Under the pieces are notes generated by a model. It did no database searches. It was not told where the DNA came from and saw only the letters and a program-made list of their open reading frames with translations. A stretch of 63,471 nt of DNA, counting the filler, from Ministeria vibrans ATCC 50519 (taxonomy: Eukaryota; Protista; Filasterea), in the NCBI GenBank assembly GCA_943704425.1. It is 8 parts of 8 records of this genome, joined end to end, with 100 filler letters (N's around TTAATTAATTAA, not from the genome) between each part and the next. Parts side by side here need not be neighbours in the genome. Positions count along the whole stretch, not along the records: positions 50,506 to 55,874 come from CALSCP010001255.1; 7 more parts are not named here. One strand, written 5' to 3'. Below, piece after piece: positions 55,485 to 55,614 of this stretch; the stretch's first letter is position 1; each line of letters opens with the position of its first letter. A program made the translations under genes and the position numbers.

Positions 55485-55614
55485 GTCGATTTGGCGGAGT
55501 GGTCTAATTCGAAGAAAAAACGAGGAAAACGCGACGGTCTCAAGCTCTTGGCACTTTTGTGTTTTGTGCATACCGTTCACTTCGGTGGCGTGGGTTCGAA
55601 TCCCACAGTCGACA
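55485..55614 (+). tRNA. trnL-CAA: tRNA-Leu(CAA) with two introns (55508-55529 in D-arm; 55545-55570 at canonical 37/38)
   Basis: Acceptor GTCGATT/AGTCGAC plus discriminator A. D-stem GCG/CGC; anticodon stem ACGGT/ACCGT with loop CT-CAA-G^T; long variable arm TCAC-TTCG-GTGG; T-arm GTGGG-TTCGAAT-CCCAC; downstream poly-T. Confidence 0.92.

Follow-up and report, generated by a model that had tools for sequence, protein, structure and literature searches.

Does a nuclear tRNA gene of a eukaryote carry a second spliced intron in its D-arm, or has a copy of that gene been disabled there? The question is raised by a tRNA-Leu(CAA) gene that is interrupted twice and lies in a 5.4-kb piece of the window, the window being the whole stretch of DNA that was analysed (63,471 nt, filler included). 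Eukaryotic tRNA splicing endonuclease (TSEN) is thought to measure from the mature tRNA body, tying introns to position 37/38, and the validated exceptions are found in red algae and nucleomorphs.

The locus is a eukaryotic nuclear class II tRNA-Leu(CAA) gene, of Pol III type 2 by its boxes and terminator. It reads GTCGATT-TG-GCG-GAGTGGTCTAA-(22 nt)-CGC-G-ACGGT-CT-CAA-G-(26 nt)-T-ACCGT-(variable arm)-GTGGG-TTCGAAT-CCCAC-AGTCGAC-A, and its parts are listed in Table 1 together with the neighbouring genes. The raw gene was not recognised by standard tools: ARAGORN in default mode reported no tRNA in the 5.4-kb piece, and Rfam at permissive thresholds recognised a tRNA neither in the piece nor in a 191-nt sub-window, its matches being limited to fragments of the T-arm. 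Spliced forms were built by script from the coordinates, with 55508-55529 and/or 55545-55570 removed. Excision of both inserts in silico yielded an 82-nt class II tRNA-Leu(caa) with a perfect cloverleaf on ARAGORN (7-bp acceptor, 3-bp D, 5-bp anticodon and 5-bp T stems), while excision of either insert alone gave no Leu call. The initial annotation had described a tRNA-Leu(CAA) gene with two interruptions at this place, and both the sequence and the ARAGORN call agree with it.

Table 1. Features of the twice-interrupted tRNA-Leu(CAA) gene and of its neighbours, in window coordinates (^ marks a proposed cut)
Feature	Position	Strand	Remark
Whole tRNA-Leu(CAA) gene, tRNA positions 1-73, two interruptions	55485-55614	+	ARAGORN after in-silico excision
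Exon 1, tRNA positions 1-22: acceptor 5' strand, U8, G9, D-stem GCG, D-loop to A22	55485-55507	+	
Exon 2, tRNA positions 23-37: D-stem 3' CGC, G26, ACGGU, C32 U33 CAA G37	55530-55544	+	
Exon 3, tRNA positions 38-73: U38, anticodon stem 3', long variable arm, T-arm, acceptor 3', A73	55571-55614	+	
A box TGGCGGAGTGG, tRNA positions 8-19, uninterrupted, upstream of the insert	55492-55502	+	Direct read
B box GGTTCGAATCC	55593-55603	+	Intact
Pol III terminator T6, AA, T14, starting 3 nt after A73	55617-55638	+	
Canonical 26-nt intron, site 37/38	55545-55570	+	C32:G(-3) = A-I pair; H 3/4, outer helix 6 bp
22-nt A-rich D-arm insert TTCGAAGAAAAAACGAGGAAAA, candidate ectopic intron	55508-55529	+	
Central helix H, 5' strand GUCU, D-loop nucleotides	55502-55505	+	Pairs 3/4 with GGAA
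Central helix H, 3' strand GGAA	55524-55527	+	
5' bulge AA^U, proposed 5' cut after 55507	55506-55508	+	
Inner hairpin h', UCG (55509-55511) / CGA (55521-55523), 9-nt loop AAGAAAAAA	55509-55523	+	
3' bulge AA^C, proposed 3' cut after 55529	55528-55530	+	
EH-domain gene	55074 to about 52006	-	Pfam EH, E = 2e-8
HOOK-like coiled-coil ORF, C-terminal 333 aa, cut by the piece edge	50559-51560	+	

Outside the D-arm insert the gene was free of damage. All 21 stem pairs, U8, A14, G18G19, A21 and U33 were kept, as were the T-loop, the G15:C48 pair, A73, the A box, the B box and the T6/T14 terminator, and a check of stems, invariant bases, boxes and terminator revealed none of the extra disabling changes that would mark a pseudogene. 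The same elements (stems, both boxes, terminator) had been described as intact before, and all were present on inspection. The A box sequence matches what we take to be the consensus, TRGCNNAGTGG. CCA is not encoded, A73 being followed by CG, and the distance from A box to B box is extended to about 90 nt. Situated shortly 3' of the A box and lacking any run of four or more T, the insert should be tolerated by Pol III in initiation and elongation. Two T4 runs do lie inside the canonical intron (55555-55558 and 55562-55565), where either Pol III reads through T4 or a part of the transcripts terminates prematurely. The tRNA gene is bracketed by a perfect 12-nt inverted repeat, AAAAATTAAAAA (55429-55440) and TTTTTAATTTTT (55618-55629); the repeat is of low complexity, and its downstream arm overlaps the terminator.

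The 37/38 intron of this tRNA-Leu(CAA) gene is ordinary. Its 3' site sits in a 3-nt bulge closed by the A-I pair between nucleotide 32 and intron nucleotide -3, which eukaryotic TSEN requires there (PMC10485636), and its CUUG is complementary to the CAAG of the anticodon region, a pairing that was also present in the full-length minimum free energy (MFE) fold. The 26-nt length, the location and the pairing of the antepenultimate intron G with C32 had all been claimed beforehand and were borne out. In pairing with the anticodon and in its C32:G(-3) pair, the intron is like that of ordinary eukaryotic tRNA-Leu(CAA) genes, such as those of the yeast SUP53 family. In those genes the D-arm is uninterrupted, and the 37/38 intron is the only one that standard TSEN is known to remove.

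The D-arm insert was examined against two definitions. The strict hBHBh' motif has a 4-bp central helix between two 3-nt bulges, with a flanking helix of 2 bp or more on either side; the relaxed HBh' or hBH motif makes do with a single 3-nt bulge, the central helix and, on one side, a flanking helix of 2 bp or more, all in splice register. Excision of the insert in silico regenerated the D-arm GCG-GAGUGGUCUAA-CGC. The exon and the insert both end in AA, so that the junction may be placed at 20b/21, 21/22 or 22/23, and the BHB register was obtained only with 22/23. When the 39-nt stretch of D-arm and insert was folded without constraints, its MFE was the BHB-like structure itself (-2.5 kcal/mol), in the register that regenerates the D-arm. 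Central helix H consisted of U-A, C-G and U.G pairs with one G.A mismatch. The contiguous outer helix measured 0 bp, the D-stem closing the motif across a 6x3 internal loop, of which the 3' 'bulge' is one side. With H at 3/4 (the G.A mismatch and one G.U) and no outer helix, the strict motif is absent; the relaxed one may be represented by bulge AA^U, the imperfect H and a 3-bp h' in register, at a chance level of 0.1-5% depending on null model and criterion. By the definitions of PMC3239211 and PMC3728597 the predicted motif is relaxed HBh'-like, not strict 3-4-3, and is weak. These results bear on three claims of the initial annotation. The 22-nt insert was found at 55508-55529, at about position 22/23, with the junction ambiguous over AA; the inner stem TCG/CGA, the bulges AA^T and AA^C and the imperfect helix (3/4) all lay where they had been placed; and cuts after the second base of each bulge did restore the normal Leu D-arm, in silico.

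Controls were run on this fold. A central helix of at least 3 together with an inner helix of at least 3 was reached in 0.1-0.2% of trials with shuffled inserts and in 1.6-1.9% of those with random 22-mers; under the criterion of any relaxed motif the corresponding values were 1% and 4.6-4.7%. The same 22-mer scored equally at 13 of 66 other positions in the mature tRNA, which means that most of the signal comes from the hairpin register of the insert with its own 3' end and not from its position, and the position-specific part of the BHB signal was only about 20%. The same geometry test was applied to canonical introns of archaeal Leu(CAA) genes (n = 30 distinct), with the first intron removed in silico before scoring, as adjacent introns mask each other. 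These gave H of 3-4 of 4, inner helices of 1-7 bp and outer helices of 7 bp. Their recovery indicates that the geometry function measures what it should and that H of 3/4 is common in real introns, and the insert (H 3, inner 3) was within the archaeal control range for H and h'. The BHB-like fold is moderately unlikely to arise by chance, which is not proof.

The MFE of the whole 130-nt pre-tRNA contained no cloverleaf and was not more stable than shuffles (z = -1.05). In this full-length fold the AAAA tail of the insert and the D-stem CGCGA (55526-55534) paired over 9 bp with UUUUGUGUU (55557-55565) of the canonical intron. Such pairing is possible cross-talk that would compete with the cloverleaf, or it may be a low-complexity coincidence.

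Analogues were searched for with patterns of two kinds. The tRNA-specific exon pattern, with 0-30 nt allowed at the insert site, had 0 matches in JGI metagenomes, and the tRNA's 3' half had 0 matches in GTDB genomes and viral contigs. A general Leu(CAA) pattern (D-loop GGTCTAA, 15-40 nt, CTCAAG, 22-52 nt, B box) had 0 matches in viral contigs and 99 loci in JGI metagenomes. On inspection the 99 loci proved to be archaeal Leu(CAA) genes with two introns, normal tRNAs that by chance have GGTCTAA upstream, and canonical-intron genes of other isoacceptors, with no eukaryotic D-arm analogue among them. The archaeal tRNA-Leu(CAA) family from sediment metagenomes (loci L003-L099, e.g. L006:6237-6340 and L010:2999-3101) has two introns, at about 31/32 or 32/33 and at 37/38, and its inner helices covary among the 30 distinct sequences.

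The canonical intron with its C32:G(-3) pair, the register of the BHB-like insert and an otherwise flawless gene make an ectopic intron the best single reading of the D-arm insert. We lean, by a small degree, towards a functional two-intron gene in which a genuine D-arm intron is cut at a relaxed BHB and leaves before the canonical one. Under this reading the locus would be a live nuclear Pol III gene whose primary transcript contains two introns spliced by proteins. The D-arm insert would fold as the relaxed HBh' motif (GUCU/GGAA and UCG/CGA, with each junction after the second bulge base), and the endonuclease, acting without reference to the mature domain, would cut both bulges, AA^U and AA^C. 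Eukaryotic endonucleases reportedly cut isolated BHB substrates without a mature domain. tRNA ligase would then join A22 to C23, restoring the GCG/CGC D-stem. Until it is removed, the D-arm insert should block the ruler mode of TSEN; it would probably leave first, with the canonical intron (C32:G(-3)) last, as in Cyanidioschyzon. We infer cleavage, ligation and the order of removal from the fold and the in-silico restoration, which were observed. Against this reading count the weakness of the motif, the equal scores of the 22-mer at other positions, the full-length fold without a cloverleaf, the long distance between the boxes and the T4 runs of the canonical intron, as well as the lack of a second tRNA gene in the 5.4-kb piece and of a eukaryotic analogue among the metagenome loci. 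The initial annotation had also read the insert as an ectopic intron, and that part stands as the best single reading, while its suggestion that the lineage may splice such introns rests on one locus.

The reading that competes most seriously, although we consider it rather doubtful, is a young tRNA pseudogene, in which repair or replication slippage left a 22-bp A-rich filler in one of several Leu(CAA) copies; the fold would be coincidental, and any transcript would stay unspliced in the D-arm and be degraded. Short D- or T-arm inserts in eukaryotic tRNA genes usually hit a single copy among many synonymous ones, and the interrupted copies are interpreted as pseudogenes, the exceptions being nucleomorphs and C. 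merolae, so that this is the standard reading for lone inserts of the kind (PMC4090602). The quality of the motif is in line with it, being weak and relaxed, with chance levels of 1-5% on loose criteria and a position-specific share of about one fifth. The insert is also of low complexity and shares AAAAAACG with the 5' flank, and the scans of metagenomes, viral contigs and GTDB returned no eukaryotic D-arm analogue. Against a pseudogene stand the lack of a second lesion in the gene, its promoter boxes and its terminator, an insert that misses the A box and carries no T run, and a fold that is the local MFE in the exact register needed. No second copy, donor or duplication of the insert was found within the 5.4-kb piece, which also speaks against this reading and led to the rejection of local duplication as the source of the insert. 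A single locus cannot separate a spliced intron from a recently disabled gene copy.

Improbable is a third reading, in which the insert stays in the mature molecule, be it a tRNA or a tRNA-like RNA serving some other function, and gives it a 32-nt D-loop with a small extra hairpin. We know of no cytosolic elongator tRNA with such a hairpin-bearing D-loop of 32 nt. The GCG/CGC D-stem can close around the insert and G18G19 stay available, but this fold of D-stem and hairpin only (-1.2 kcal/mol) is less stable than the BHB-like one. The added 22 nt should moreover disturb the packing of the class II D-loop against the variable arm, as well as the D-arm that TSEN54, TSEN2 and TSEN34 contact (PMC10485636). 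Still less probable is an error of assembly or consensus as the source of the 22 bp. Nothing specific points to such an artefact, though homopolymer-rich flanks can trouble some sequencing platforms, and the insert, in a gene that is exact elsewhere, is a 22-mer of complex sequence and not a homopolymer length error, with no similar sequence nearby to mis-join. A spliceosomal intron was rejected, no GT-AG being present at any of the three possible junctions, as was a SINE or retroposed tRNA, since the terminator follows at once and flanking direct repeats are absent.

The piece around the tRNA gene is eukaryotic. GC is about 60% in its exons and about 40-45% in its spacers and introns, which contain long T runs, and the spacers between genes measure about 400 nt. 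The EH-domain gene contained at least three GT-AG introns (about 210, 145 and 64 nt), one of which splits the EH motif (...SQIW^KLSDVDDDG...). One of its introns has a TGCTAAC-like branch site and a T22 run, and a Ser/Pro/Thr-rich exon of 734 aa includes a poly-Asp tract. Protein queries were single exons and ORFs. The 734-aa exon, searched whole and as residues 625-734, had no homologue in a library of 15 billion proteins, and an exact look-up of the 734-aa ORF came back blank. The HOOK-like ORF gave a single weak match (24% identity, E = 1e-4) in an exhaustive HMMER search of 1.8 billion cluster representatives, while the ESM Atlas returned only generic coiled-coil clusters. Judged by these sequence searches, the source lineage appears to be unsampled in the libraries used.

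As precedents for an ectopic intron, archaea and a few algae such as Cyanidioschyzon had been named in the initial annotation; these hold, and the list is incomplete, as Chondrus crispus and the nucleomorphs are missing from it. The nuclear tRNA introns of Chondrus crispus lie at D-loop 20/21 or T-loop 58/59, with two introns in tRNA-Tyr and tRNA-eMet (PlantRNA 2.0, 10.1101/2021.12.21.473619; PMC13578239), and its D-loop introns at 20/21 combined with canonical introns were validated by RT-PCR (bioRxiv 10.1101/2021.12.21.473619). Like the Chondrus genes, the present one is nuclear and has a canonical 37/38 intron and, shortly 3' of the A box in the D-loop region, a second, candidate intron, for which the AA ambiguity allows a Chondrus-like 20b/21 junction. 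The Chondrus genes are also taken for pseudogenes by tRNAscan-type tools, in which the present gene resembles them. Unlike in Chondrus, a single gene is concerned here, and Leu(CAA) is not among the isoacceptors named in the Chondrus text.

Ectopic introns of 11-69 nt occur in the D, anticodon and T regions of Cyanidioschyzon merolae tRNA genes, where the BHBs are of strict hBHBh', relaxed HBh'/hBH or 'no H' type (-11 to +1 kcal/mol) and processing ends with the 37/38 intron (PMC3728597). A short extra intron in the D region, of relaxed BHB type, would be a feature in common. In C. merolae, interrupted genes make up about 63% of all tRNA genes and permuted ones also occur; the comparison here is with a single locus. 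Spliceosomal introns are very few in C. merolae, whereas the gene next to the present tRNA has at least three. Red algae do not usually have such intron-rich genes, and the density of introns in the neighbour speaks against a Cyanidioschyzon-like host and against most other red algae.

For the nucleomorph tRNA genes of Guillardia theta and the chlorarachniophytes, the account of Kawach 2005 and Maruyama 2010 relayed in PMC4090602 gives D- or T-arm inserts of 3-24 nt and up to three introns in each gene, with excision confirmed by RT-PCR, and most nucleomorph ectopic introns cannot form a BHB (PMC3728597). Nucleomorph genomes are AT-rich and highly compact, and the present piece is unlike them in its exons of about 60% GC, its introns of 64-210 nt and its spacers of about 400 nt. 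The GC content and the spacing both argue against a nucleomorph, and that origin was rejected on these grounds.

Among archaeal tRNA introns, 22/23 is a listed insertion site (PMC4090602), and non-canonical introns are cut by EndA of the (alpha-beta)2 or epsilon2 form (PMC4090602, PMC3239211). The present gene shares the site and would share the relaxed HBh' logic, and two-intron Leu(CAA) genes exist in archaea (30 distinct retrieved). It differs from archaeal genes in its Pol III A and B boxes, T-run terminator, lack of an encoded CCA, anticodon-complementary intron and neighbours with GT-AG introns, and the enzyme here would be the heterotetrameric TSEN in place of the archaeal EndA.

Outside red algae, nucleomorphs and archaea, no D-arm insert with a fold like that of a second tRNA-type intron is known. 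With validated precedents in Cyanidioschyzon, Chondrus crispus and nucleomorphs, the present gene at most adds to a known class, and it would be noteworthy mainly if its host lies outside red algae. As the gene is invisible to ARAGORN and Rfam, an essential UUG decoder of this kind could be scored as missing or as a pseudogene. Should the locus prove to be no more than a young pseudogene, there is nothing unusual in it. If a D-arm intron were spliced in another lineage, the archaeal-style, motif-only mode of cleavage would be in wider use in vivo, which would touch on the question of an ancestral or a regained origin of ectopic introns. The broader proposition is that a eukaryote rich in introns, and neither a red alga nor a nucleomorph, routinely runs its endonuclease in a BHB-only mode independent of the mature domain, with D-arm introns removed before canonical ones; it is put forward tentatively and we hold it to be unlikely on present evidence. 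If true, ectopic tRNA introns would not be confined to red algae as a peculiarity of theirs, and would be an archaeal-type trait that was either retained more widely or regained repeatedly.
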